The notes under the pieces were generated by a model. That model ran no database searches. It was not told the DNA's origin and was given only the letters and a program-made list of their open reading frames with translations. A stretch of DNA of 64,000 nt, taken from contig JAPMXV010000056.1 in NCBI GenBank assembly GCA_026936335.1, positions 310,001 to 374,000 on the forward strand. The letters are read 5' to 3'. This document shows positions 1 through 59,395 of the stretch, piece by piece. The DNA comes from Mantamonas sphyraenae STR306. Its lineage: Eukaryota; Protista; CRuMs. Numbering within the stretch: position 1 is the first letter of the stretch; the number at the start of each line of letters is the position of its first letter. The position numbers were made by a program, and so were the translations under genes.

Positions 1-3000
1 CACTGGTCGACCCTGCATGCTGCCCCGTCGGCGTAAACAGATACTCCAGCATGTCCGCCTTGATCTTGGCCACCGATTCGGCTTCAATGCGTCCCTTGGG
101 GTAGCGCTTGCCCGAAAACGTCAGACGCAGGTACAGGAGGGTGCGGAACAGAATGACCTCCAAATCGTCGGCGTCTGCGCCTTCGTCTCGCCGCAGACGT
201 GCCAGCTCCTGCAACAGGTCCTTCAGCGGTGTCACATAGTCACCGAGGGCGTTGTTGAACATGTAGATGAGCGCGTTGTACAGGTGACCCTGACGACACA
301 ACTTGACCACGTTGTGAAAGTCCAGGTTGGTCACATTCATGTGTAGGATGCACTGTTCCACACGTCGCAGCAGCCCCTGCTGCTCAAAGTGGGACACCAT
401 GGCCTTCATGACCCCCGGTGACAGGGTGGGCAGCTTGTCGTTCAACACATACGGCTCCAGCAACTCTACAAACAGGCCCGCGTGTCCAATATCCCTGAAC
501 TTCCACCAGATCTGCTCAAACAGCAGGTCGGTGCGGTCGATGGTCTGGCAGTAATCAATGCACGTGCCACCCACGTTCCGGTAGTGATTGCTGATCGCCT
601 GTGTGTTCAGACCCAGCTTCAGCTCCATCGACGGCGACATGGCACTCTCCACGTACTTGAGCAGCAACTCGGCAATGTAGTCGCGTGTGATCTCGCGGAT
701 GGCCTCCATGTTGCGTGGCAGACCCACCACCGCCTTGCCGCGACCCTCGTAAAACTCCAGGGCCAGACTGAGGGCGTCCAGCCAGTCGTGGTTCACCACG
801 TGCAGCTCGATGCGGTCCTTCCACGAGAGGATGGAGACGGTCTGCACCTTGTCCACCCCCAACAGGTAGCACACGTTGCGGAAGCAGCACATGCTGTTGT
901 GAAAGCAGTTTTCCATGCTGCCCGTGGGCGAAATGAAGCGGTTGTGAAACACCAGCGCCGCGCTGGACACGTCGACCACCTCCAGTTCCTGCAGGGCAAA
1001 CGGGTCAAACACACGCAATTGAGAATCGGTGGTCAGAAGCAGCACCACCTGTTCACCCAGCCATGTGATTCCGGCCAACTCGGTGTCGGTGACATAGTCC
1101 GCCACTGGCAGAAAGTCAAGCTTCACAGGCGCACGTGGGTCGTCCTGCGAGGCAAACACTTGATGCATCTGAATCTTGGTGCCCCACACAATCGTCAAAA
1201 TGGGAGGCAATGGCTTGCGGGGCACACTGGCCTGCTTCTCCTTGCCGTTTTTGCCACTGCTGCTACTGCTGCTCCCACTGCTGCTCCCACTGCTGCTGCT
1301 GTCGGTGGGACTTGTGGCTCCGTCGGGCAGCAGCACGGGACGCCACGAGAGACACGGGAGGGCTCCCGAACGCACGTTCTTGGGCACGTCCAACGATTTA
1401 CAGATGATGACCTCAGGCTTCAGGGAAATGATGAGGCAGCGTGTCCAAGTGCAGATGGCAATGAGGGCAAAGTGGTCTGTGGGATGCTGCACGGCGCCCG
1501 GAGGCAGCACGGCCAGGGCGACGATTTGTCCGCCGCTGCCGTTGACCACACACTGCGAGTCCACCATGTGCATCATAAACATCTTGGAGATGGTGTGGAG
1601 AAACACAGTGCCTTTGGCATCCACAGAGAGCACCGAAGAACGACCCTCGATGAAATGCACATTGGTGATGGGTGCCGTGTGCTGGTCGGCAATGTTTTTC
1701 AGCACGTCCTGGTTCTTCAGCTCCCACACAAGCACCTCGCCTGAAAGATAGCCCACCACAATCCACTCGCCGTCGTCGGAGATGTCCAACGCCGTCACCG
1801 AACCATGGTTGGTCTCCTTCTCCCCCAGGATGATGCGCAGGTTCTCGCTTTTGTCAAACACAAAGATGATCCCTGTGCTCAGGCCAATCGTGATGTAGTT
1901 TGGATGCACCGCCATGGCTGCCGGTTCCCCTGCTGTGCTACGCACGTCGTCCTTGTCCAGCTTCTTGGTGATCCGTTCCATGATCGCCACCTTGCTCAGC
2001 GGCTTGCCCTTCTTGGTCCGCTTCACACGCAGCGGTGCTACCATTTCAAAGTTGCTGTCCTTGCTGTCTGCAATGGACGTCGTGCGTGTCATCTTGCTCA
2101 CGGCTGCCCCGCCTTCCTGCCCAGAGGCTGCTGCCGAGCGCCCGCTCGAGCTGCCTGCCCGTTCGTCCAACACTGCACTCGACGCCGACATCGACCGTGC
2201 TGCCAGCTGCACATAATCACAGTCGTGGGTGGGTTGAAAGTGGTGCAAGGGGATGGGGAAGGGATGGTGTAAGTCTACGCATGTGTGTGTGTGTGTCTCT
2301 CTCTCTGTGGCCAGAAATGAAGAGGTCATTTTCACCGCGTCTGTACGCGGTGGTTGCATGCATGCTCTGCCTCACCCTCACACACACACAATACACATAC
2401 ATCTCCTTCTAGGGATTCCATGAGGCCGTCCACGTCCATGGACATGCTGTCGTCTGCGCCAGAGGCCACTTCCGCCTGAAGGGCATTGTCGTCCTCATCC
2501 ACCGATTCCAACAGCCGCCGCACCTCGTCACTGCCGCCTTCCTTGCTCCCACCCGTGCCTAGAAGGGTTTCAACGCCTGGGAACTGGTCCTTTGAACCCG
2601 ATGTATGTTCTCCACTGGGTGTGCGTGTGTGTGTGTGCGTGGAGAGTGAGTGCGTGTTTGTGTCAGCTTCCCCTCCCTGCCGCTGCCTTTGCTCTGCGAC
2701 TCGTGTGCCCATTTCTCTCCTCTCTGTATGTCTCTCGTCCCTCCCTCTACGCATCTCTTCCCTCCCCCTCCCCATCCCTTCCCTCTATGCACACTCACTC
2801 GTCGTCAATGCTCGCCAGCAGATCTTCGAGCGAGACGCCAGCGACGTCCATTTCCCCCGCCCTTCCTGCAGCTCCACTCTCTCTCCTCTCCATGTCTGTC
2901 TCTTCCACTTCTCCTCCATCTCCTCCTGTGTCCATTCCTTCTCCCTTCCCGACGCCGTCACTGTCGTCGTCATGGCCCTCTGCGTCGTCCAACAGGCCCG

Positions 3001-3349
3001 TGTCGGCATCACCGCCTTCGTTACCCTGGTTTCCGCCGCCTACTCCGCCTCCAGTCAATGCCAGCAGGTCCAGGTCGTCGTCTTCGGCGAGAATGTCTTC
3101 AATGGTCAGTGTCGACGCGTCTGCGCCTGCCTCGCCGTCATGTGCGCCTGAATCGGCGCCAACTGCGCTCGGTCCTGATCCCGAGCCGCGCCGCAACGAG
3201 TCAAAGAAGGCGTCGTCGTCGTCGTCCTCCGCCAGGATGGCGTCCAGGTCCACGTTGCCATCTCCACCACCGCCTGCAGAGGTGTACGCAGACAGGTCCA
3301 GGTCCAAATCCTCGTCGCTATCGCCGAGAATTTCCTCCAGACTCGCCAT
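1..3349 (-). CDS. VPS8: Vacuolar protein sorting-associated protein 8 (CORVET subunit), 3' end runs off the window
   Basis: Inferred exons 3349-2799, 2614-2401, 2206-<1 with GT..AG introns in compatible phase. Acidic N-terminus, then WD40-like GEPAAMAVHPNYITIG..GSVTALDISDDGEWIVVGY, then the Vps8 core EPYVLNDKLPTLSPGVMKAMVSHF..VEQCILHMNVTNLDFHNVVKLC..LYNALIYMFN. Confidence 0.88.
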
Positions 3350-3391
3350 GCCGGATGGATGCGTTTGCTCGAATTGCGCACGGAGTGGAGG

Positions 3392-3392
<1 letters not shown>

Positions 3393-3430
<38 letters not shown>
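3393..3430. repeat. (CA)n microsatellite; similar tracts recur in introns and intergenic gaps throughout the window
   Basis: Directly visible CA run between the KARS stop and the VPS8 start. Similar tracts near 5795-5822, 7068-7111, 13735-13758 and 32684-32727. Confidence 0.95.
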
Positions 3431-3433
<3 letters not shown>

Positions 3434-3497
3434 AAGGAACAGAAGAAGAAGAAGCTCATTTTTTGTTGTTGCTGTTTGGTTCTTGGACAGATTGGAC

Positions 3498-5703
3498 CTA
3501 TGCCACGACATCCACGTTGCCGGCCTCGGCGTCGGCGGCGGCGGTGCTTGTGGACTCGCCTGCCTCGTTGCTGCTCTCCACGGGCTTCATGGCCGGGAAC
3601 AAGAGCACCTCACGGATGGTCGAGTTGTTGGTCATGAGCATGGTGAAGCGGTCAATGCCCAGGCCGAATCCAGCAGTGGGCGGGAGGGCATGCTCCAGGG
3701 CTTCCACGAAATCGTCGTCGCCGTCCTGTGCCTCGTCGTCACCCTCGCTCTTCTGCTTCATCTGCTCGTCGAAGCGAGCCTTCTGCACCAGCGGCATGTT
3801 CAACTCGGTGTACGCGTTCATGATCTCAAAGCGCGAGACAAACGCCTCGAAACGCTCGGTCAGATTGGGGTTGTCGCGGTGGGTCTTTGCCAGCGGGCTC
3901 ATCACCGCCGGGTGGTTGATCAAGAACGTCGGGTTGACACACTGGCTTTCCAGGAACTCGCCAATGAGCTCATCCAAAAGGCGAGCGCAGGTGAGCGGAG
4001 GCGTGGGCTCCACACCCATCTTGGCACACACACCAATCAGGAACTTCTTGGCGTCCTCGCTGGCCAGATCCTGCGGGAACTCCACCTCACAGATCTTTTC
4101 CAGTTCCGGCACAATGTCGATGCGCTTCCAGGGGCGGGAAAAGTCGATGGTGAGCGCCTCGTCGGAGCCGTGCGGGGTGTACTCAAAGGTGAGCGAGCCC
4201 TGGATCTTCTCCACAATGTTGCAAGCCATCTCCTCGGCCATGTCCATCAGGTCGTTGTAGTCGTGGTAGGCGGCATAGAACTCCAGGGTGGTGAACTCCG
4301 GGTTGTGTGTCTGGTCCATGCCCTCGTTGCGGAACACACGACCAATCTCATAGACCTTGTCCAGTCCACCCACCACACTTCTTCAGGAACAGCTCGGGCG
4401 CAATGCGCAGGAACAGGTCCATGTTGAGCTCGTTGTGGTGCGTCTCAAACGGACGCGCGGTGGCACCACCGGCCTTGAAGTCCATCATGGGGGTCTCCAC
4501 CTCCAGGAAGCCAAGGTCGTCCAAGTAGCGACGGATGCCCGAAATGATGGCAGCACGCGTCTTGAACACCTCCACGGAGCTCTGGTTGCAAATCAGATCC
4601 AGGTAGCGCTTGCGGTAGCGGATCTCGTTGTCCTTGAGACCACTCTGGGCCGGGAGCACATGGAGACAGGGCGACAGGAGCACCATGTTGCTTGCATACA
4701 GAGTGAACTCACCCGACTTGCTGTAGCCCGGATGACCCGTGCAGCCGACAATGTCACCACGACGCAACAGGGTGTGCAACTCGATAAAGTCATACTCGGC
4801 ACTCTGGGCATCGGCCATGACCTGCACACGCACTCCGTCCTGCATGAGGTCGTAGAACAGCAGCTTCTGGCCAGACGCACGCTTGCTGTACAACCTGCCT
4901 GTGATCGACACCGTCACGCCCGTCCTGATGTCCCCATTGTTCAGGCCCACGTTGTACGCCTTGACAAACTCACGCACATCCATGTCCGTGTGGAACTTGT
5001 GCGGGTACGCCGTCTTGCCCTTGGCCTCGTACTCTGCAATGTCCTTCAGGCGGTTCTCGTAGTATGCCTGGGAGCACCAGAGGGTGGAGGTTCACACAGA
5101 TGTGATGCATGTTTCCATGTGTGTGTGTGTTGTGTGTCAGTGCGCTTGTTTGGCGTCGGGTGCAAGGCGAGAGAGGCAAAGCCCCGTCCTTGGTGCGGCA
5201 CCGGGGTGTGTTCGCCGAAATGCGCTCGCGTATGGAAAACCCTCGCCGGCCTTACATTGGCGTCCTTCTCGTCCACTGCATCCAGCTTGAGCTTTTCCTG
5301 CTTGGGTCCGGCCTCAGCCTCCTTGGCAGCCTGTGCACAGAGGGCAATGGGTGGAGGGAGAGTGAGTGACGGGTGTTGGACGGCAGAGAAGCTTGGGCGT
5401 GACGTACGCGTTCGGCAGCCTTCTTCTTCTTGGCCTCCTCCTTCTTGCGCTGCTTCTCCAGCTTCTTGAGCTGGCTGTGGGAGGTGAGAAAAGTGACAAC
5501 AGAGGGGACAAAGGAGCATTGAAGGGTTGTGAAAATCAAAGTGGCGTGTGTGAGCAGTCAAAAAAAGCAGCACGGACGAGTGCAACACCCAGGGGCACAC
5601 ATGCGACGCACTTCTTGCTCAGCTTCTGCTCGCCTTCCTGGACAGGCTGCTGCTCAGTGGGCGGCTGGTCTTCTTCTTGCTTCGACGACGGCTGGTTGCT
5701 CAT
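3498..5703 (-). CDS. KARS: Lysyl-tRNA synthetase, class II, cytosolic type (3 introns; apparent frameshift near 4370)
   Basis: Anticodon OB fold ([18 protein letters not shown]), then [64 protein letters not shown] and [14 protein letters not shown]. Confidence 0.97.
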
Positions 5704-20963: not shown

Positions 20964-22773
20964 TCAGACAGAGAAGTACATGGGCACGTGGGAGACGAGA
21001 CCACCCCTCCAGGCGCAGGTGAGGAGGGCGCCGTTGGGGAAGTTGGGTTGGAACTCCATCATGTCGAGGGGCATGGAGTTTGGCGAACGGATGAAGCCAA
21101 TGGTGGTGAGTTGGAAGGAGAGGGTGGAGCGAACAGCAAAGGTGGCGACAAGCTCACTGCCAGGATGGTTGCCATCAAAGGCGACGGCAAGGCGTTTGCC
21201 AGTGGGGTCGAGAGCAAGCTGGCGGATGTTGCCACCGACGTGGAGGAGAGTGCCAGTGGAATGTGTGCGCACACTGGTCATGCCCATGTACTCGTAACAC
21301 AGTGGGGAACCACTGATGCGAGGGGGCAGGTTGTCAAAGACAATGTTGTGCACAATGCATGTGCCATGGACGTTGACCAGCAGCATGTGGCCATCGTGAC
21401 TCCAGCAGGCACTCTGCACGTAGCGTTCAATGTTGCTGAACGCCTGACAAGTCCACCACAGGGTTTCATAGACGAGGAAGCGTGCAGAGGTGAGGCCGAC
21501 AAAGAGGTAGTGGCCATTGGGAGACCATCGGAGCATGGTGACCCCACCCCAGGCACGACCACGGTTCAACAGCATGTGTGTTTCGTGGTGGGTGTCCCAC
21601 ACGACCACACTGGCGTCGTTGCACGAGCCCGTGGCCAGGTACTTGCCACACGGGGACCACTCCATTGCCGTGATGGGTGCATGGCCCTCGGGAGACTTGA
21701 AATAATTCATGGTGGACCCATGGGTGCCCCCACGCATGCGGTTGCGTCCTGCCACAAGCAGGGTGCTTGCATTGCCGCTGGCATCTGCGTTGCTCAGAAG
21801 ACTGGCTCCGGCAATGGGCGACACCAGAGGCGAGGCACCGGACCGGTCGATGCTCATCGACGTGGCCAAGCCACTACGTGCCAGTGGAGAGGCGTAGACG
21901 GAGGAGGACGATGACGACGAAGATGATGACGATGATGACGATGACGAAGAGGTGCTTGTGTTGATGGGGTCGGCCATGGACGTGCGCAGGGGTGATCGCA
22001 GCATGGAACCATGGTGTTGGGGAGAGACACCTGCACGCAGGGGACTGGTAGCACGTGGAGAGGTGAGCAGGTCGCCCTGGGAGAGGGAGAGGGCACTCAT
22101 GTGCATTGGGTCACCACCATGGTGGCGGGTGCCATAGCGGGGAGCAGATGCAGTGACATGGAGGGCAGAGGAGGAAGAGGAGGAGAGATCGTCCGTGGCA
22201 GCAGCGGCGGCAGCTGCAGCGGCAGCCACATCCCAGCCTTGGGTGGCCACCGTCCACAGACACACACCGTGCTGGGAGGCCACAGCAAGGACGTCGGTGG
22301 CGTTGGGTTGCCATTGGACACAGGTGACGTTGCGTTGGAACTCATGCACAAGTACCTCTTGGGCTTCAGCCAAGGGCATGGCAAACACCTGCACGCAATG
22401 GCTGGCGTCGGCCACAGCCAACAGATCGCGTTCACGATGCCAATTGATGCTATGGACACGCTGGTCGGCACGAGGACGCAGCGATTGAGGCTGTCGTGCC
22501 ATGCTGGGTTTGCTACGGGCTGGTACAAGGGGACGCACAAGCATGCGCAGCAGGTTGAGCAGCAGAAGAACGATGCCTGCCACGACTCGCCGAAACACAC
22601 CACGGGACGAGGACACAGACGAAGACGCTGCTGCACCAGATGCAGACTTGGTGTTGCTGCTGCTGGATGATTGTGCCTTGCCATTGCCCTGCGAGTACAA
22701 TGCAGCAGAGGCACTGAGCTTCTTGTCTTGGAACAGGCGAGTGGCCAGCTCCGCCTGCTGTGATTCTTCACCC

Positions 22774-42513: not shown

Positions 42514-43132
42514 CGGGGGCAGGGAGAAAGAGAATGAGAGAGAGAGAGAGGAAGCAAGAGTTGCTGATTGGGTTGGGAGAGGGAGAGTTTGGGACGAGTT
42601 GGTTTTGTTTCGACTGGAGGACCGGTGATGCCATGCATGGTTTTGGAGACACACAAATCCAATGGCACAAACATTGCACCCATGGCTGGTGATGTTGTGG
42701 ATGGACGGGAAGGGGCGCACTGGTTTGGGGAGGGGGGCAACTGGGGAGGGGAGGCACATGCAAGGCAAGAATGGCAAAAAGTCGGTGCACTGAAGGCATA
42801 GGAGGCATGGAGAGAAGAGGGAAGGGGGAAGAAGGGCGAAAGGGAGGAGAGAAATGTCCACCTTCCGATTCGGAGTGCGTCAGGGAGCAACAAAGGCTCT
42901 ACGCGTCCGACTCAACAAAGGAAGGCAGGATTCAAAAGGGCTCGACGGCCCCGGAAAACTCGGGTCATTTGTCTGCGGGCATTCGGTTGTGGACTAACCT
43001 GGGGCACAACCGCGCTCGGGTTGTTAGGCCGTGCGCAGTTACTATCTGGTCAACGTCCACACCATCATATCCCGGCCGCACATTTACGCTGGGGGGGTTT
43101 GGGCGGTGGCGCCATCGAAGCCAAGAAGAACG

Positions 43133-44464
43133 ATGTGGATTGTGCAACTGGCATGGGAACGGGCACGGAAGCAGCCTGTAGCGGCAGCGGTGGTGTCGTG
43201 TGCGGTAGTGTACGGCCTGGAGCGCATGCGACAGTGGTGGTGGGCAGGAAGAGGATCGAGCTCGGGTGGGACGCGCGCAGCTGTGGACGGGAAGGGGAAG
43301 AAGCTGGTGGCTCAAGAGACGATAGAGGATGTGGAACAGGCAGGGGCAGGGACAGTGTCTCGTGTGGCAAAGCAGGCGTCAGCGGGTCTGTCTGAAGTGG
43401 ACCAACTGCGGCTGGAGCTGAAGCGAAGCAACGAACGGCTGACGGCGGAGATCTCCAGGCGCAAAGAGGAGCGAAGAGGGCGCACGACGGCGGAACGACG
43501 CGTGCGAGAGCTGCAGGAGGCGTTGGAAAACGCAGGGACGGTGGAGGAGGGTGAGGAGGGGGGTGTGAAAGAGGGTGAGGAGGGAGGATCGTCGTCGTCG
43601 TCGTCGTCGGGAGGAGGTGTACGGCGACATACGATGTACGAGTTGGGACGACTGGAAAGTGTATTTCGAACACGCAACGGATGCCCGCGTCAGGGGAACC
43701 TTGTGCCAACGGGAAAGGCGCAACTGAAGCTGGACGCTCGACTGATCCAAGGGGCGGCACTGGAGGGGTTGGAAGAGTATTCGCATGTGTGGCTGTTGTT
43801 TGTGTTTCACGAAAACACAAATGTGGCCTCGCAACGGGAGATGGGCACGAAGCAACGAGCGCTGAAGGCAAAGATCAAGCCACCTCGATTGGGGAGGAAG
43901 GTGGGCCTGTTTTCGACTCGTACACCACACCGACCAAATGCACTCGGGTTGTCTGTGGCCACACTGGAGGGCGTGGAGGATGGGGTGGTGTACTTGAGCG
44001 GAGTGGACCTGATCGACGGCACCCCGATCCTGGACATCAAGCCGTACATTGCCGAGTACGACCGAATGATGGACACACGCCAAGCCGAATGGTTGAGTGC
44101 GTCGCTGACGCCGCAAGTACGCATTGGGTCGGTGGAGTGGACGGAAGAGGCAGAGGCGCAGTGGGAAGCGTTGGAGGATGCAGCGCTGAGGTTGTATGCC
44201 GACGACAAGGAAGCATTGCGAGCAACTGTGGAACAAGTGATCCATCTGGACCCTCGCTCGCACTATCGTCGGACGCGAGGCAAGGGAGCAGGAGAGGAGC
44301 CGGCGAGCTCGACACACTGGATGCGTCTGGATGCCATCCAAGTGGGCTTTGACGTGGTGGCACATGGACACAGCAGCAGCGGAAGTGAAGAGGGTGACGC
44401 AGACGCAGATGGGGAGCAGAATGTGGCACGTGTGGTCCACGTGGCGTTGGCGGAAAACGGCTGA
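43133..44464 (+). CDS. TRMO: tRNA (adenine37-N6)-methyltransferase TrmO/YaeB family
   Basis: FRTRNGCPRQG, LEGLEEYSHVWLLFVFHEN, GLFSTRTPHRPNALGLS, GVDLIDGTPILDIKPY, DPRS. Confidence 0.95.
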   Translation: MWIVQLAWERARKQPVAAAVVSCAVVYGLERMRQWWWAGRGSSSGGTRAAVDGKGKKLVAQETIEDVEQAGAGTVSRVAKQASAGLSEVDQLRLELKRSNERLTAEISRRKEERRGRTTAERRVRELQEALENAGTVEEGEEGGVKEGEEGGSSSSSSSGGGVRRHTMYELGRLESVFRTRNGCPRQGNLVPTGKAQLKLDARLIQGAALEGLEEYSHVWLLFVFHENTNVASQREMGTKQRALKAKIKPPRLGRKVGLFSTRTPHRPNALGLSVATLEGVEDGVVYLSGVDLIDGTPILDIKPYIAEYDRMMDTRQAEWLSASLTPQVRIGSVEWTEEAEAQWEALEDAALRLYADDKEALRATVEQVIHLDPRSHYRRTRGKGAGEEPASSTHWMRLDAIQVGFDVVAHGHSSSGSEEGDADADGEQNVARVVHVALAENG

Positions 44465-46093
44465 TCCGTAGCTAGAAGCACGACGGAATGAAAACACACA
44501 CGATGTGCAGTATGGGCTGGATGAAGCTGGCAATGAACGAGGGACATGTGCATGGATGGCCTCCACGGTCGACGGTGGTGTCCCCATAGAGTGTGGTGCG
44601 GGCAAACTACACTCAGGTTACCTTTCGGATGCGGCCACTGCTCGTCCAGTTCTCTACAGCAAACTCCACCACCACCGTCGGGTACTGTGGCGTGCCACAC
44701 AGTCATGTGTGTGCTTGAATCAATCACACACGTCGTTCTCGACACACATCAACCATCGCAGAAACTGGAACGGACTTCCAGAACTCTCCGAAAGAGCACG
44801 GGAAACGGCTTTTCCTGCGTGTGGGGTAATCGTGGCCTCCACTGCACGATGGATGACTCTGTGACCACTGAGGAGGCATGCTGATCCGGTCGATGGCCGT
44901 TCCTGGTTGTACACGCGCATCCCTGCTTGGAAACCGCGCCACCCTCCCTGTTCCCCGCGAGAATGTGTGAATACGAACACGTGTGCGTTGCACGTTTCCA
45001 CGCACTGCCCACGTCCCTTTGGTCGCCTGGCACAGCCACACGCGTGCTTGGACCATAGGACCCTGTGCAACACTCTCCACACGCACTTGTCCGCTTTGCC
45101 GATAGCCGGACCCGCTGCACAAAAAGTTCCCAAAACCCTCCTCACCCACGTATCCAGCGCTACATGCAACCCTGCCTTCTTCATTGCCTCCAACAGCCCC
45201 GCGCCTACTCATCTGCACACCGCGTGTACGCCCTCTCTTGGCGACTGCAGTGTGGAGGCGCTCAATAGTCCTCGTGGCTTTCCTTCCTGCGTTTTGCCCA
45301 CCGCAACCCACATGCATTGCACAGCCTATGTACATCGTCACATCACACACGCGTGTCAGCACCCATGTACATCCCACACCACGCACTCTCTGCCCTTCCC
45401 CGTCTCCACACACTCTCCTACACACCCGCTAACCCTCGTCCCGAAAAAGCAATCCCAAAATGGCTAATTTTGGACGGCCTTCTCTCAACTCATTACACTC
45501 TCATGCACTCCCTTGGCAACAAACACCACACTTACGTGTTTGGTCCAGCATCCGACGTGCGCCATTCTGGTGTCTCTGTCGTCCCGCATTGGATGCACAC
45601 CGACGAGATCTTTGCGCTGCCACGCAATCGCTTGCGCTTCTTTGACGCAGGCTTCTTTCCTCGCTTCCGGTTGCCTGTCTTGTTCGGCTTTGTGTTCAGA
45701 CGCAGTTCCTTTTCGTAGACACGTCGGTTCGATGCCGCCATTCGCTTGCTTTGCCGTTCTCCGGCTTGTTCGTCAACCGGAGATTTCAGTGTCAGCGGCA
45801 CCTGGCTCGTGTACGCCTCGTATCCACTGCCGCTGCCGTATCTCCTGTTGCTGTTGCTGTTGTTGCTACTGTTGCTGATCATTCTGTTGCTGTTCTGGTT
45901 CTGTACCATGTCCAGCTGCCGCTCAAATCGGCCTGTTCCCTGCGTTCGTTGCAAAGCTGCGAGTTGGGCCTGCAGCAATTTCTGCTGTTGTTGCAGCTCT
46001 ACGCCACGTACAGCCTGAACCAGCTCTTCAAACTGTTGTCGCTGGTTGGTGTTGCTGTGAGACTCTGTGGTCATGGCATCCACGCGCTGTGTG
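44278..46093. repeat. Left arm of a ~1.8-kb near-identical inverted repeat
   Basis: Reverse complement of 47275-49097 with only scattered SNPs and indels. Weaker similarity continues inward to ~46350. Confidence 0.95.
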
Positions 46094-46479
46094 GTGGTGT
46101 GCTTCTTCTGCAAGGGCAGCCAAAGCTGCGGCATGTCCACGCCGTATTGCGACAAAACGCTTTTTAGCGGCGGAAGCTTGTGCTCGCCCTCCGCGCTGCT
46201 CACGGACAGAGCACGGGGCGAGTTCAGTGCACTGGTATTCATGGACGGTAAGGAGCTGCCGCTGCCGTGCTTGTGCAGTTCAGACAGCATATAAGCCATC
46301 TCCTTGGTATATTGAGAATGCGAGCCCTGGGAAGAGTTCTTGTCCTCTGCAAGGCTACGATTGTTCCCGGAGGCCTGGGAGGCCTGGGATGTGCCGCTAG
46401 ATTGCTTGGACGCACCCGTACGGCCTGTATGTGTGCCACTCTCCACGTTGCTGCGCCCCTGCGCTTGTTGCATTTGCAT
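45262..46479 (-). CDS. GATA zinc-finger transcription factor, copy A (intact; C-x2-C-x18-C-x2-C)
   Basis: CIQCGTTETPEWRTSDAGPNT|LCNACGLRWAKRRK. The finger is split by intron 45326-45535 (GTAAGT..TAG). The start is uncertain because in-frame ATGs also occur upstream, e.g. 46749. Confidence 0.9.
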
Positions 46480-46957
46480 TACACAAAAAATGAGGAAAAG
46501 TGGTGGGCGTTCCGGCGCTTTTTCGCTGCACAGAATTTTCGCTTCTGGAAGTTGCCTGTGGTTCCCCCGGTCAACGCCAACGACCGTGTGTTTGCATGCC
46601 TTCTGGATGTGCCCAACATGCTTCATGTGACTCTGTACTGCAACAGGGCTCCCAAGGAACTTTTTCCGCCTTCTGTTCGGCGATGCTGAGGCCACCTGCG
46701 CAGCAGCTGGTCTCAGGGCGATGTGGGGCTGTCGGGGCGTGTATGACATGAGAGTGATGGATGCGAAAGGCGTGTGATTTGGTTCAACGAACCGGTCCCG
46801 GTTTCCGTTTCGCCAAGTCGGACCCACCTTGGGTCCGCAACGTTTTCCGCCGTCGCATCGGGCGCCGGGGTCGGCAATCTTTTCCCCGACGAATCGCACA
46901 CGAGGTGCAACAAAGACGCAGGACACATTGACGGCATCGATTGGCAAAACACATAGG

Positions 46958-48111
46958 ATGACGTTGACGACAGAGATTACCAACGAGCACACCACGCAAC
47001 AGAGTGTTGCGGAGGACAAAACGGCGAAGCGCTCTCGAAGCCCTCGTGAACTGGCGTCGATGCTTACCGAGCTCCACAAGCATGGCAGCGGCAACTCGCT
47101 GCGCTCCATCACGCACAGCACCACGAGTTCCACCAGTAGCCTCAACTCGCCCCGTGCTCTGTCCGTGAGCAGCGCGGAGGGCGAGCACAAGCTTCCGCCG
47201 CTGAAAAACCTTTTGTCGCAGTACGGGATGGACATGCCCCAGCTCTGGCTGCCAATGCACGGCGGCAATGGCCACACACAGCGCGTGGATGCCATGACCA
47301 CAGAGTCTCACAGCAACACCAACCAGCGACAACAGTTTGAAGAGCTGGTTCAGGCTGTACGTGGCGTAGAGCTGCAACAACAGCAGAAATTGCTGCAGGC
47401 CCAACTCGCAGCTTTGCAACGAACGCAGGGAACAGGCCGATTTGAGCGGCAGCTGGACATGGTACAGAACCAGAACAGCAACAGAATGATCAGCAACAGT
47501 AGCAACAACAGCAACAGCAACAGCACAGGAGATACGGCAGCGGCAGTGGATACGAGGCGTACACGAGCCAGGTGCCGCTGACACTGAAATCTCCGGTTGA
47601 CGAACAAGCCGGAGAACGGCAAAGCAAGCGAATGGCGGCATCGAACCGACGTGTCTACGAAAAGGAACTGCGTCTGAACACAAAGCCGAACAAGACAGGC
47701 AACCGGAAGCGAGGAAAGAAGCCTGCGTCAAAGAAGCGCAAGCGATTGCGTGGCAGCGCAAAGATCTCGTCGGTGTGCATCCAATGCGGGACGACAGAGA
47801 CACCAGAATGGCGCACGTCGGATGCTGGACCAAACACGTAAGTGTGGTGTTTGTTGCCAAGGGAGTGCATGAGAGTGTAATGAGTTGAGAGAAGGCCGTC
47901 CAAAATTAGCCATTTTGGGATTGCTTTTTCGGGACGAGGGTTAGCGGGTGTGTAGGAGAGTGTGTGGAGACGGAGAAGGGCAGATCGTGCGTGATGTGGG
48001 ATGTACATGGGTGCTGACACGCGTGTGTGATGTGACGATGTACATAGGCTGTGCAATGCATGTGGGTTGCGGTGGGCAAAACGCAGGAAGGAAAGCCACG
48101 AGGACTATTGA
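46958..48111 (+). CDS. GATA zinc-finger transcription factor, copy B (apparent frameshift at ~47524)
   Basis: Same C-terminus and intron (47838-48047) as copy A, with a different N-terminus. An extra AGCAC (5 nt) in the AGCAAC repeat shifts the frame before the finger. Confidence 0.8.
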
Positions 48112-49097
48112 GCGCCTCCACACTGCAGTCGCCAAGAGAGGGCGTACACGCGGTGTGCAGATGAGTAGGCGCGGGGCTGTTGGAGGCAATGAAGAAGGCA
48201 AGGTTGCATGTAGCACTGGATACGTGGGTGAGGAGGGTTTTGGGAACTTTTTGTGCAGCGGGTCCGGCTATCGGCAAAGCGGACAAGTGCGTGTGGAGAG
48301 TGTTTGCACAGGGTCCTATGGTCCAAGCACGTGTGTGGCTGTGCCAGGCGCCCAAAGGGACGTGGGCAGTGCGTGGAAACGTGCAACGCACACGTGTTCG
48401 TGTTCACACATTCTCGCGGGGAACAGGGAGGGTGGCGCGGTTTCCAAGCAGGGATGCGCGTGTACAACCAGGAACGGCCATCGACCGGATCAGCATGCCT
48501 CCTCAGTGGTCACAGAGTCATCCATCGTGCAGTGGAGGCCACGATTACCCCACACGCAGGAAAAGCCGTTTCCCGTGCTCTTTCGGAGAGTTCTGGAAGT
48601 CCGTTCCAGTTTCTGCGATGGTTGATGTGTGTCGAGAACGACGTGTGTGATTGATTCAAGCACACACATGACTGTGTGGCACGCCACAGTACCCGACGGT
48701 GGTGGTGGAGTTTGCTGTAGAGAACATGGACGAGCAGTGGCCGCATCCGAAAGGTAACCTGAGTGTAGTTTGCCCTCACCACACTCTATGGGGACACCAC
48801 CGTCGACCATGGAGGCCATCCATACACATGTCCCTCGTTCATTGTCAGCTTCATCCAGCCCATACTGCACATCGTGTGTGTTTTCATTCCGTCGTGCTTC
48901 TAGCTACGGATCAGCCGTTTTCCGCCAACGCCACGTGGACCACACGTGCCACATTCTGCTCCCCATCTGCGTCTGCGTCACCCTCTTCACTTCCGCTGCT
49001 GCTGTGTCCATGTGCCACCACGTCAAAGCCCACTTGGATGGCATCCAGACGCATCCAGTGTGTCGAGCTCGCCGACTCGTCTCCTGCTCCCTTGCCT
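47275..49097. repeat. Right arm of the ~1.8-kb near-identical inverted repeat
   Basis: Reverse complement of 44278-46093. The outer boundary is at AGGCAAGGGAGCAGG. Confidence 0.95.
48911..49097 (-). pseudogene. Duplicated 3' fragment of TRMO (last ~61 codons)
   Basis: Encodes GKGAGDESASSTHWMRLDAIQVGFDVVAHG..VHVALAENG*, almost identical to the TRMO C-terminus. No catalytic domain. Confidence 0.85.
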
Positions 49098-49221
49098 TGG
49101 GGTTGTGCGTGCACAGTTGCGTCCATCAAGGTGTTGCACATGTAACACGTGCGTGGAAACATCGCTATGTGCTGTCGATCCTCTTGGAGGCATCGCGTCA
49201 CGTGCCCATGCTCAAAACGCC

Positions 49222-50208
49222 CTACATTTGTCCATCCTCCTCCACGTTGGCCTTGACCAGTGTGATGGAGTGCAAATCCAGAGAGAATGGCCCCTCTTGC
49301 TTGTCCGCCAGTGTGAACCCCAGGGTTTGAAGCTTGCTGGTGTTCATGAGCGGTTGTTCTTCCTGCACCATCCCACGCCACGTCAGCACGAAATCGCGCT
49401 CAAACAGCAAGCGCACACGGTGGAACCCTTCCATGCCCTCTGCCTCTCGCGCCTGTACAATCCCGACACTTCGTCGGGGCCGTGCTTGAGGCGGCGCCAC
49501 AAATGCTTGATGCAAATGATGAGGCACCAGGTTCTCTGTCTGTAAATTGAAAAAGTATGTGCGCTCGTCGTTCTGCACAGGCGCGGCTGCGTTAGCCATG
49601 GTGTCTCTTTCCCCTCTGCCAATTTAAGCACATCTGCGTCGGCCACGTCCCATACACTGGCGCCCTCACGACACGTACCCACCGCACCGTCAACTCCACG
49701 CCGTCGTACTCGTCGATTTCGTCCAAGTCCATCAACGTGGCCTGAATGTGTGCACAGCAACGTGTCAGTTCATCACTTTCTCACCACGGTGGCCGCCGTT
49801 CAACCTTTTCTGCGTCACCTACAGGCGTCACAATGTTGGCAAACCCGCTGCGGATCATCTCGCCACTTGTTTCCAGCGACAGCTCGCCATGGAAGCGTGC
49901 TGTGACTTGCGTGTCAGCTCCTAAACATGTGCGCATACACCGTGCCGTGGCGCATTCATTGCACAACACCTACCGCACTGGTCCTGCTCCACAAACACCA
50001 GATCCGCTCGTGAAAACCCGCCTACTGACGAGTCCGCCCGCACCTGCCACGCCTCCACGTCCTGCGCTCGGGCAAACTCCACCAGTGTCTTTCGTTCGGG
50101 CACTGCATCAAACGACAACGAGAACGCCTTGCGTGTTCGATTCTTGAACGTCTGCAGTTTCCGCTTCCACATCGCCGTGGCTGCTCTCGCGCTCTCTCGC
50201 TGAACCAT
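49222..50208 (-). CDS. NDUFAF1: Complex I intermediate-associated protein 30 (multi-exon)
   Basis: WQVRADSSVGGFSRA, ARFHGELS..RSGFANI, DERTYFFNLQ, DFVLTWRGMVQEEQ, LGFTLADKQEGPFSLDLHSI. The start could be 50172. Confidence 0.88.
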
Positions 50209-57522: not shown

Positions 57523-59395
57523 TTACGCCTCATCTCCCTCGTCTTCCAGCAGTTCATCACCAAAGCGTGCGAGGGCGTCCAGTTCACGCTCTGCTTCACC
57601 CGATCCGCCGGCCTCGGCTGCTGCGCGTGCCTGCGCTGTGCCGCCCATACCCATGCGCTCGTACTGACGCAGCGTTGCCAGCACAGTGTTGCGCTCTTGC
57701 TGCACGTTGCGCAGCTGCAGTTCCTTCTGAGCAAGCCGTTCTTCCAAGTACTCTGTCTTTGCGCGTTCCTCTGCACTCGCATCCATCTTGCGTCGCTCCA
57801 TGTCTCGCTCCAAAGTGCGTGCGTTGATTGTGGCCTTTGTCAGCTCCTTCTTCAGTTCAGCGTTCTCCAGCCTCAGTTTGCGCTCGCGCTCCTCGGCCTC
57901 ATCGCTCTGCTCTCGGGCAAGTTCTGCCAGCGCCTCACGGTGAATGCGTCGCTCTTCCTCCAACTGTGCGTACACCTCGTCCATACGCTCGCGGTGTTTC
58001 TTGTTCTCCTTTCCGCTGCTTTCGTGGATCAGCTTCAAGCGCTCCACTTCGCTGCGTTTGGATCCCAGTTCCCGCTTCAGCTCGCCAATCTCCTCCTTGT
58101 ACGCTTCCAGCTGCTTGGCAACACTGTTGCGTACAGCTTCCACTTGCGACTGAGTCTGGTTCTGCTCCTGCGACCGCTGTGCCAGCAGCATATCCCGCTC
58201 TCCCCGCAGCCGCTCCACTTCTGTTCGCAGCAAGCGAGTCATGCGACCGTGTCCGGCACCACCTTCGTTGTCATCGCTTTCGTCGCCACTTCCGCTGCCG
58301 CCCTGCTGGCCGCGCTTTGCCTGTTCGACTACCTTGCGCTTCCACATGCCGTCCAGCACACGCAGCCGGCTTTGCATGAACGACAGCCGCTCGACGTATG
58401 TCGACACCGTCACCATGCCTTCCTTCAGCTGCGCTTCCACTGTTCGCAGACCTGCCTCGCGTCGCTGGATGGCCACCATGGCCTGGCGCACGAGTTGCTT
58501 TTCGCGGTGCGCCTGGGTCGTCGCCTGCTCTTGCGAAAGCTCCAACTTGGCCACCTGCGTCTTGAGTTTCTTGCTCACGCTGCATTCCAGTTCCAATTCG
58601 GCCTGCAGACCGACTGCAGTCTGGTGTAGCACCTCGCGTGTGGCTTCCAGCGTCGTGATTTCCTGTGCGGCTTCACCCAGCCTTCCCGTCAGCTCGTCCA
58701 CCTTGTTGCGCAGGGTCAACTCGTCTGTCTTGTGTGCAACCATGAGTTCAAAGACCTTTTCGCGCCAGCGTGTCACCAGTCGCTCCTCTGTTTCTGCCTT
58801 GCTCACGCCATCCTGGCGCGCGGCGGCAATGTCGCCCTCCTGCACACGAAGGATCTGCTGCAGTGCCTCGGTGCGTGTCTTGAGCAGATCCACCTGCGTT
58901 TGAAGCGCTTCCTTCTCCTCTTGCAACTTGTCGACCTGTGCCGCACTCAGCAGCGCCTCCGAGCCCGTCGTCTTGGTCGAGTTGGGGAAGTACGCCTTGA
59001 AGTTGTTGACCAGGCGTCGCTCCTCCTCCAGCTGTGTCTCAAGCTGCTTGATCTGCTCCTGCAGGTCCTTTTGTACCGCAGCGGCCTCCATCTGCACGGA
59101 CTCCACCTGCAGAGCGAGCTTTTCGTTGGCTCGCTTCACATCAAGCATCTCTGCTGTTGTCTTGCGTCCTTGCTCCCTGTGCTGCGACAGGCGTTCGTTG
59201 GCGTCTTTCAGTCGTCCTTGCAGCTCGTCCATCTGTTCTTGCATCTCTGCCATGCCAGCATCGTCCTGGTACACAACTTGCGGCTTGTCGTTCTCCTTGT
59301 CTCCCAAGTGTCTTGCCATCGACTCGAGCTGCTGCATGAGCTGCGCATTGGTTTGCTCCAGGGTACGCAGACGAGCGTCGTTTGCGTTCCACTGG

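Follow-up and report, generated by a model that had tools for sequence, protein, structure and literature searches.

A 4.8-kb palindrome in Mantamonas sphyraenae carries two head-to-head GATA-type genes with near-identical outer arms, probably made alike by gene conversion

We analyzed a stretch of 64,000 nucleotides from the protist Mantamonas sphyraenae STR306 (GenBank assembly GCA_026936335.1, contig JAPMXV010000056.1, positions 310,001 to 374,000, forward strand), hereafter the window; all positions given without a contig name are those of the window. It holds a palindrome of 4.8 kb in total with two GATA-type zinc-finger genes lying head-to-head, GATA-L on the left and GATA-R on the right. 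Two arms of about 1.8 kb flank a core of 1.18 kb. The locus also occurs in four samples of one sequencing study (X1–X4), all in the form of short-read contigs, and the region compared with them was 44000-49400 (5,401 letters). The features of the locus are listed below, where the reference is the STR306 assembly.

44278-46093: left arm, 1816 nt; found by repeat search and global alignment, and by doubled depth in X1 and X2
47275-49097: right arm, 1823 nt; found by repeat search, global alignment and genome search, and by doubled depth in X1 and X2
46094-47274: core (spacer), 1.18 kb; single-copy depth in X1 and X2
46166-46224, matching 47144-47202: perfect patch of 59 nt within the diverged core, either a separate conversion patch or a site of strong constraint
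45536-46479, minus strand: GATA-L exon 1; begins with ATG at 46479 and stays open for 314 codons and 2 nt, up to and including the first half of the zinc finger
45326-45535, minus strand: GATA-L intron, 210 nt, GT..AG, splitting the zinc finger
45262-45325, minus strand: GATA-L exon 2, LCNACGLRWAKRRKESHEDY followed by a stop codon; second half of the finger
46958-47837, plus strand: GATA-R exon 1; ATG at 46958, frame broken at 47524-47528, stop at 47579-47581 in the reference
47838-48047, plus strand: GATA-R intron
48048-48111, plus strand: GATA-R exon 2, identical to GATA-L exon 2
47524-47528, plus strand: insertion of CACAG where an AGCAAC repeat ends, upstream of the sequence for the basic region and finger; within the reference, in the right arm only

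An inverted-repeat search returned four gap-free blocks, 98–100% complementary, which make up 44278-46093 and 47275-49097. These are exactly the coordinates at which an earlier note, made from the sequence alone, had placed two reverse-complementary segments with scattered differences. A fifth block of 128 nt, 89% complementary, lies directly inside the arms. This is the only inverted repeat of at least 150 nt in the window, and the arm sequence has only two copies in the 25-Mb, 78-contig genome. The left half was aligned globally with the reverse complement of the right half, and identity was computed per 100 columns. Over 1816 nt, the arms differ by 17 substitutions and by three indels of 1, 1 and 5 bp, and identity across them is 96–100% per 100 columns. 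Beyond the outer edge (44278/49097) it is random, at about 50% with many gaps. At the inner edge (46093/47275), where the note had reported an abrupt step, identity falls from 100% over 249 nt to 86–91% for about 140 nt, and then to random. These innermost 249 nt are the sole perfectly identical stretch of the arms, and the CACAG indel lies 249 nt from the inner border. The border itself coincides with a block in which all seven residues differ between the two proteins (LQKKHTT vs MHGGNGH), accompanied by indels.

The arms contain the C-terminal two thirds of the GATA protein (basic region and finger), the intron, the 3' untranslated region (UTR) and the tail of a neighboring gene, TrmO. About 1 kb of arm lies downstream of the GATA stop codon, and its final 187 nt are the coding end of TrmO, so that the roughly 800 bp of non-coding DNA described earlier is only partly a correct account. 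The core contains both 5' coding ends and, between them, about 650 nt of unrelated DNA (the promoter region), much as the note had described its core of about 1.2 kb, and the diverged peptide pairs that it quoted are present there. In X1 the 59-nt patch forms a separate contig of 59 nt, at twice the single-copy depth. GATA motifs, a sign of autoregulation, were absent from the core, and Rfam and tRNA scans of the locus gave no match.

The gene pair is predicted to encode GATA-type zinc-finger transcription factors, which would bind (A/T)GATA(A/G) sites in DNA. Read across the intron, the finger cysteines (CIQC, 18 residues, CNAC) form a CX2C-X18-CX2C pattern, and the locus thus has the GATA spacing CX2C-X17/18-CX2C (PF00320). 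Exon 1 matches positions 1–19 of the PF00320 profile with 19.6 bits (GATA-L) and 22.1 bits, and exon 2 matches positions 20–35 with 24.3 bits. Scored separately, each half falls under the 26.8-bit cut-off of the family because the intron splits the finger. An Atlas feature search gave a weak pointer to GATA clusters (0.87), which serves as a lead only. A word-based protein search and a metagenome scan with GATA-L exon 1 as query returned no relatives of the protein outside the finger. The splice itself is seen in X3, where one contig joins the end of exon 1 directly to 45325 and no contig covers the intron. X3 is labelled “DNA?”, and we took it as RNA because of the spliced contig, the lack of an intron contig, the range of depths (33–3500) and the adapter ends.

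The two halves of each gene differ sharply in their divergence (Nei-Gojobori estimates). In the core coding sequence (69–85 codons), dS is 0.67–0.87 and dN is 0.18–0.24, and the resulting dN/dS of about 0.27 indicates that purifying selection acted on both copies through most of their history. In the arm coding sequence up to the indel (82 codons), dS and dN are both 0. The proteins align from residue 42 (GATA-L) and residue 17 (GATA-R) onward, nearly to the N-terminus of the right copy. Protein-level selection cannot explain the arms, since they are about 99% alike in the intron, the 3' UTR and the TrmO tail as well. The TrmO tail in the right arm is a dead copy, 98–99% identical to the real tail; unless re-copied, such a non-functional fragment would have decayed at a dS of about 0.8. 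The GATA coding sequence of the arm, roughly 620 nt long, contains none of the 17 substitutions. The arm differences are clustered (median gap 27 nt, P ~0.003), with four single-nucleotide polymorphisms (SNPs) grouped at 45379-45399. The locus therefore has the form known for palindromes, in that arms at least about 99% alike surround a unique spacer in the organism itself, and the arms are far younger than the duplication (dS 0 vs 0.67–0.87 in the adjoining core). A close GATA paralogue elsewhere in the genome was considered as a conversion donor, and none was found.

Next, the palindrome was compared with the short-read samples. In X1 the mean word depth was 74.6 in the arms vs 37–39 in the flanks and core, and in X2 it was 95.1 vs 44–53. 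Contigs of X1 and X2 cross both outer borders by 30 nt (k-1), ending at 44307 and starting at 49068, and cross both inner borders (46064-46195 and 47173-47304). The core is covered by a single-copy contig of 979 nt. At several core positions X1 and X2 differ from the reference and from one another, and they therefore represent other isolates; the between-isolate difference in the core is 0.2–1%. In conclusion, at least three genomes carry the palindrome, and it did not arise in assembly, since two other isolates show both the twofold arm depth and four bridged junctions. The assembly artefact that the note had named as a possibility is thus contradicted.

The two arms are collapsed in the contigs of X1 and X2, where the alleles are unphased and the allele patterns differ between samples; contigs built from a de Bruijn graph do not reveal which way round a segment lies when inverted repeats flank it. 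The TrmO tail differences between the real tail and the right-arm copy at 49075 and 49079 are apparently private to the reference: an outer-arm contig of X2, at twice the single-copy depth, has the left-type letters at both positions. The X1 and X2 contigs that lie at the right outer border have two unlisted differences apiece.

Taken together, these data make it probable that an old inverted duplication, whose promoters and N-termini have diverged, underwent recent and probably repeated conversion of its outer 1.8 kb. A GATA-type zinc-finger gene would have been duplicated long ago in inverted, head-to-head orientation, with the duplicated piece reaching from inside the 3' end of TrmO to at least the GATA coding start. 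The promoters and 5' coding parts would then have diverged under purifying selection, and the outer 1.8 kb would have been re-homogenized by non-allelic (arm-to-arm) gene conversion via general homologous recombination, probably in more than one event. At the inner border, the heterology of the LQKKHTT/MHGGNGH block would halt heteroduplex extension, and selection for distinct N-termini may hold the border in place. An occasional inversion of the core by crossover between the arms would be an expected by-product, one that the proposed process does not need.

The old duplication and the homogenization of the outer arms, both proposed in the note, are supported by the step in dS from 0.67–0.87 to 0; the repeated homogenization that it also claimed is suggested only, namely by the 59-nt patch, the clustering of arm differences and the lack of coding substitutions among the 17. 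Several points weigh against our interpretation. The non-coding arm divergence, 17 in about 1200 nt (1.4%), is not lower than the 0.2–1% found between isolates in the core, and so conversion is recent but cannot be demonstrated to be ongoing. Phased arms come from one genome only, and the collapsed arms of the other isolates cannot reveal homogenization within each isolate. The protein word search and the metagenome scan yielded no outgroup for the locus or the protein. Finally, a single long-tract event would look much the same.

The note had described two paralogues with different N-termini and homogenized C-termini. The homogenization of the arms stands; what the note overlooked is that the right copy of the reference is frameshifted, its frame ending at 47579-47581 before the basic region and zinc finger. 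The 31-mer next to the indel occurs nowhere but in the two arms, and the arm contigs of X1 and X2 terminate exactly at the indel, from which it follows that both indel forms exist in these two samples. In the reference, the right 5' end is linked to CACAG and to four SNPs of the intron. A contig of 989 nt in X4 runs from right-specific core (47144-47273, 0 mismatches) into 854 nt of arm, and this arm has the left-type allele at every one of these five markers, the indel and the four SNPs; X4 has a low depth (6.8) and unsettled nature (RNA or DNA), and the contig may cross popped bubbles. In X3, right-specific 5' contigs begin near 46899 (to 47311) at depths of 1816–2218, no contig lies on the left-specific coding part 46172-46508, and a 143-nt contig spans the indel in its in-frame form at a depth of 3063. 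X4 likewise has contigs for the right 5' end only. The copy expressed in X3 and X4 thus looks like an intact right copy, and GATA-L, which is intact in the reference, looks silent in X3. The difference in linkage is consistent with arm exchange among strains (a crossover in the 249-nt segment, flipping the core, or conversion), with polymorphism, or with mis-phasing of the reference.

The frameshift indel sits at the 3' end of a CAG/CAA microsatellite (Gln/Asn/Ser-coding) at 47464-47530 and 45840-45900. Stretches resembling this microsatellite occur at a dozen other sites of the genome, and in contig mapping it draws in unrelated contigs. Two apparent opposite-strand contig joints were considered as inversion junctions and rejected. 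One is a spliced mRNA mapped across both copies; in the other, a contig of the right copy, the arm portion matches the left arm more closely.

Three other inverted pairs of the genome were examined.

Contig C1, 20807-23546 and 26000-28739: RAD51 pair; arms of 2.74 kb, about 99.2% alike, spacer of 2.45 kb, both borders sharp
Contig C28, 51601-51807 (plus strand) and 58963-59169 (minus strand): PABP pair; equal-scoring, inverted, 7 kb apart
Contig C60, 269812-269994 (plus strand) and 273802-273984 (minus strand): RPL23A pair; equal-scoring, inverted, 4 kb apart

In the RAD51 palindrome, 9 of the 23 arm differences fall in the outermost 100 nt (C1:20807-20906) and four more form a 16-nt cluster at 22589-22604, similar to the cluster at 45379-45399 in the GATA arms. 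Palindromes of kb scale and about 99% identity seem unusually frequent in this genome. That housekeeping genes share this geometry points to the GATA locus being one of several kb-scale inverted duplicates that arise from a general mutational process rather than a dedicated GATA switch. Candidate sources would be staggered-break inversions (PMC1885836) or fold-back replication, followed by conversion.

Could the arms have been made alike without repeated conversion? A one-off, recent re-copying could have replaced the 3' portion of an older paralogue, carrying the TrmO tail along, with no recurrent homogenization; its form could be long-tract conversion, break-induced replication or a fold-back template switch running from 46093 to 44278. 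The sharp outer border and an arm divergence as large as the between-isolate diversity agree with such an event. The RAD51 palindrome is sharply bordered on both sides and its arms are equally alike (about 99.2%), as would be expected if several events of this kind had come in a burst. The perfect 59-nt patch and the significant clustering, on the other side, suggest tracts of several ages, and we regard a single event as unlikely, though it is the strongest competitor to repeated conversion. It is very hard to credit that the palindrome is a fold-back chimera or a falsely duplicated haplotype of the long-read assembly. Palindromes are a known artefact class, but the arm depth and all four junctions in the short-read contigs of two isolates speak against it, as does a unique core with two different, conserved 5' coding ends. 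Least credible of all is an explanation without conversion, in which purifying selection alone keeps the arms alike and the N-termini evolve fast: the arm coding sequence has indeed no substitutions, yet the intron, the 3' UTR and the dead TrmO fragment are about 99% identical too, and synonymous sites are identical in the arm and reach a dS of about 0.8 just inside the core.

A functional switch would give the palindrome a different meaning. Crossover between the arms would invert the core, and a crossover within the 249-nt segment would let either promoter and N-terminus module acquire the arm with the in-frame finger, so that cells would toggle between two GATA isoforms. The joining of the right 5' end to CACAG and its four intron SNPs in the reference, and to a left-type arm in the X4 contig, would fit such exchange; so would the in-frame form in X3 RNA at the depth of the right-specific exon contigs, the coexistence of both indel forms in X1 and X2, and the fact that both X3 RNA and X4 have contigs for the right 5' end only. 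Against this, the short-read contigs do not span the 1.8-kb arm and no core orientation is seen. The samples are different strains, with shared and private SNPs, so polymorphism, conversion or reference mis-phasing explain the same data, and the X4 contig, with its low depth, may owe its form to popped bubbles. A plain flip, moreover, changes nothing: with nearly identical arms, and with both promoters and 5' ends in the core, it rebuilds the same two genes, and the products would be altered only if recombination took place between the inner border and the indel. Judged by anatomy, then, the orientation of the core would not decide which regulator is expressed. The core lacks GATA sites, and similar palindromes carry housekeeping genes. 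The note saw no recombinase in the window, and none was found genome-wide: the tyrosine (PF00589) and serine (PF00239) recombinase families gave no match in the whole 25-Mb genome. The locus also differs from site-specific invertase systems (Hin/Gin, Fim, FLP), which pair a recombinase with short inverted sites, in that its repeats are 1.8 kb long. We therefore hold a switch to be improbable. A shade more doubtful still is its extension, in which recombination near the indel would give the intact finger arm to either 5' module, a clone would make one of two switchable GATA isoforms, and the palindromes of the genome would form a family of toggles.

Old inverted duplication followed by arm conversion has close relatives among known systems. 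In sex-chromosome palindromes (human Y P6, PMC3723533; X, PMC8981503), intrachromosomal conversion with multi-kb tracts keeps the arms identical. These palindromes resemble the GATA locus in having inverted arms at least about 99% alike around a unique spacer, and inversion of the spacer is a rare by-product there. Their arms, however, measure tens to hundreds of kb instead of 1.8 kb, and the GATA pair straddles the border between arm and spacer, so that only its 3' parts are homogenized. The flip/flop region of Saccharomyces chromosome XIV (PMC9731477) inverts passively and recurrently with no dedicated recombinase and is stable on laboratory timescales. There, too, paralogous genes form homogenized inverted repeats; the repeats are 4 kb long and surround 24 kb with 15 genes, and both orientations have been observed, whereas the GATA locus has a 1.2-kb spacer with two 5' ends only.

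The note had drawn its analogy from the mating-type flip/flop of methylotrophic yeasts. The geometry fits, since Ogataea polymorpha and Komagataella also combine kb-scale inverted repeats, general recombination and alternative regulators at the two ends. The position-dependent silencing logic does not carry over: in Ogataea, the flip moves one MAT locus under centromeric repression (PMC4238957, PMC5720833), whereas at the GATA locus it rebuilds the same genes, no silencing neighbor is known, and the genes encode GATA factors, not mating-type regulators. Inverted duplications from staggered breaks at Drosophila inversion breakpoints (PMC1885836) would explain the origin of an inverted flanking segment and fit the many gene-bearing inverted pairs of this genome; the model covers the origin only, and not the step in dS from about 0.8 to 0 within one gene. 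A further parallel is partial concerted evolution with islands of divergence (PMC3924837; Caenorhabditis, PMC3966223), in which a converted part adjoins a diverged part as it does here. Nothing essential differs, and the GATA locus is a clear inverted-pair example.

Concerted evolution of duplicates is thus an already known phenomenon, to which this locus adds another case. It is a clean and small one, since dS drops from about 0.8 to 0 within one gene pair at a border defined to the base, and the dead TrmO fragment in the arm provides a neutral marker. A compact 25-Mb genome with inverted pairs is tractable for questions about the origin of palindromes, the frequency of conversion and flipping, and whether a border is held by selection. 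The locus is also a warning for annotation: for two thirds of their length the two copies cannot be separated by short reads, and the frameshift seen in one of them may be peculiar to the strain or a product of mis-phasing.

The genes that adjoin the palindrome are the following.

43031-44464, plus strand: TrmO (tRNA methyltransferase O) open frame; TrmO_N, E = 6e-38; last 187 nt inside the left arm
48911-49097, minus strand: duplicate of the TrmO 3' tail, outermost in the right arm, without a TrmO body in front
49222-49599, minus strand: last exon of a CIA30/NDUFAF1-like gene; CIA30, E = 5.5e-13; ends 125 nt from the right arm

An exact-product look-up of the neighboring 5'-nucleotidase for other assemblies returned no record. 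An RNA contig covering 44213-45325 links GATA exon 2, across about 1 kb of 3' UTR, with the coding sequence of TrmO. Either the convergent transcripts of TrmO and GATA-L overlap, or the assembler merged them.

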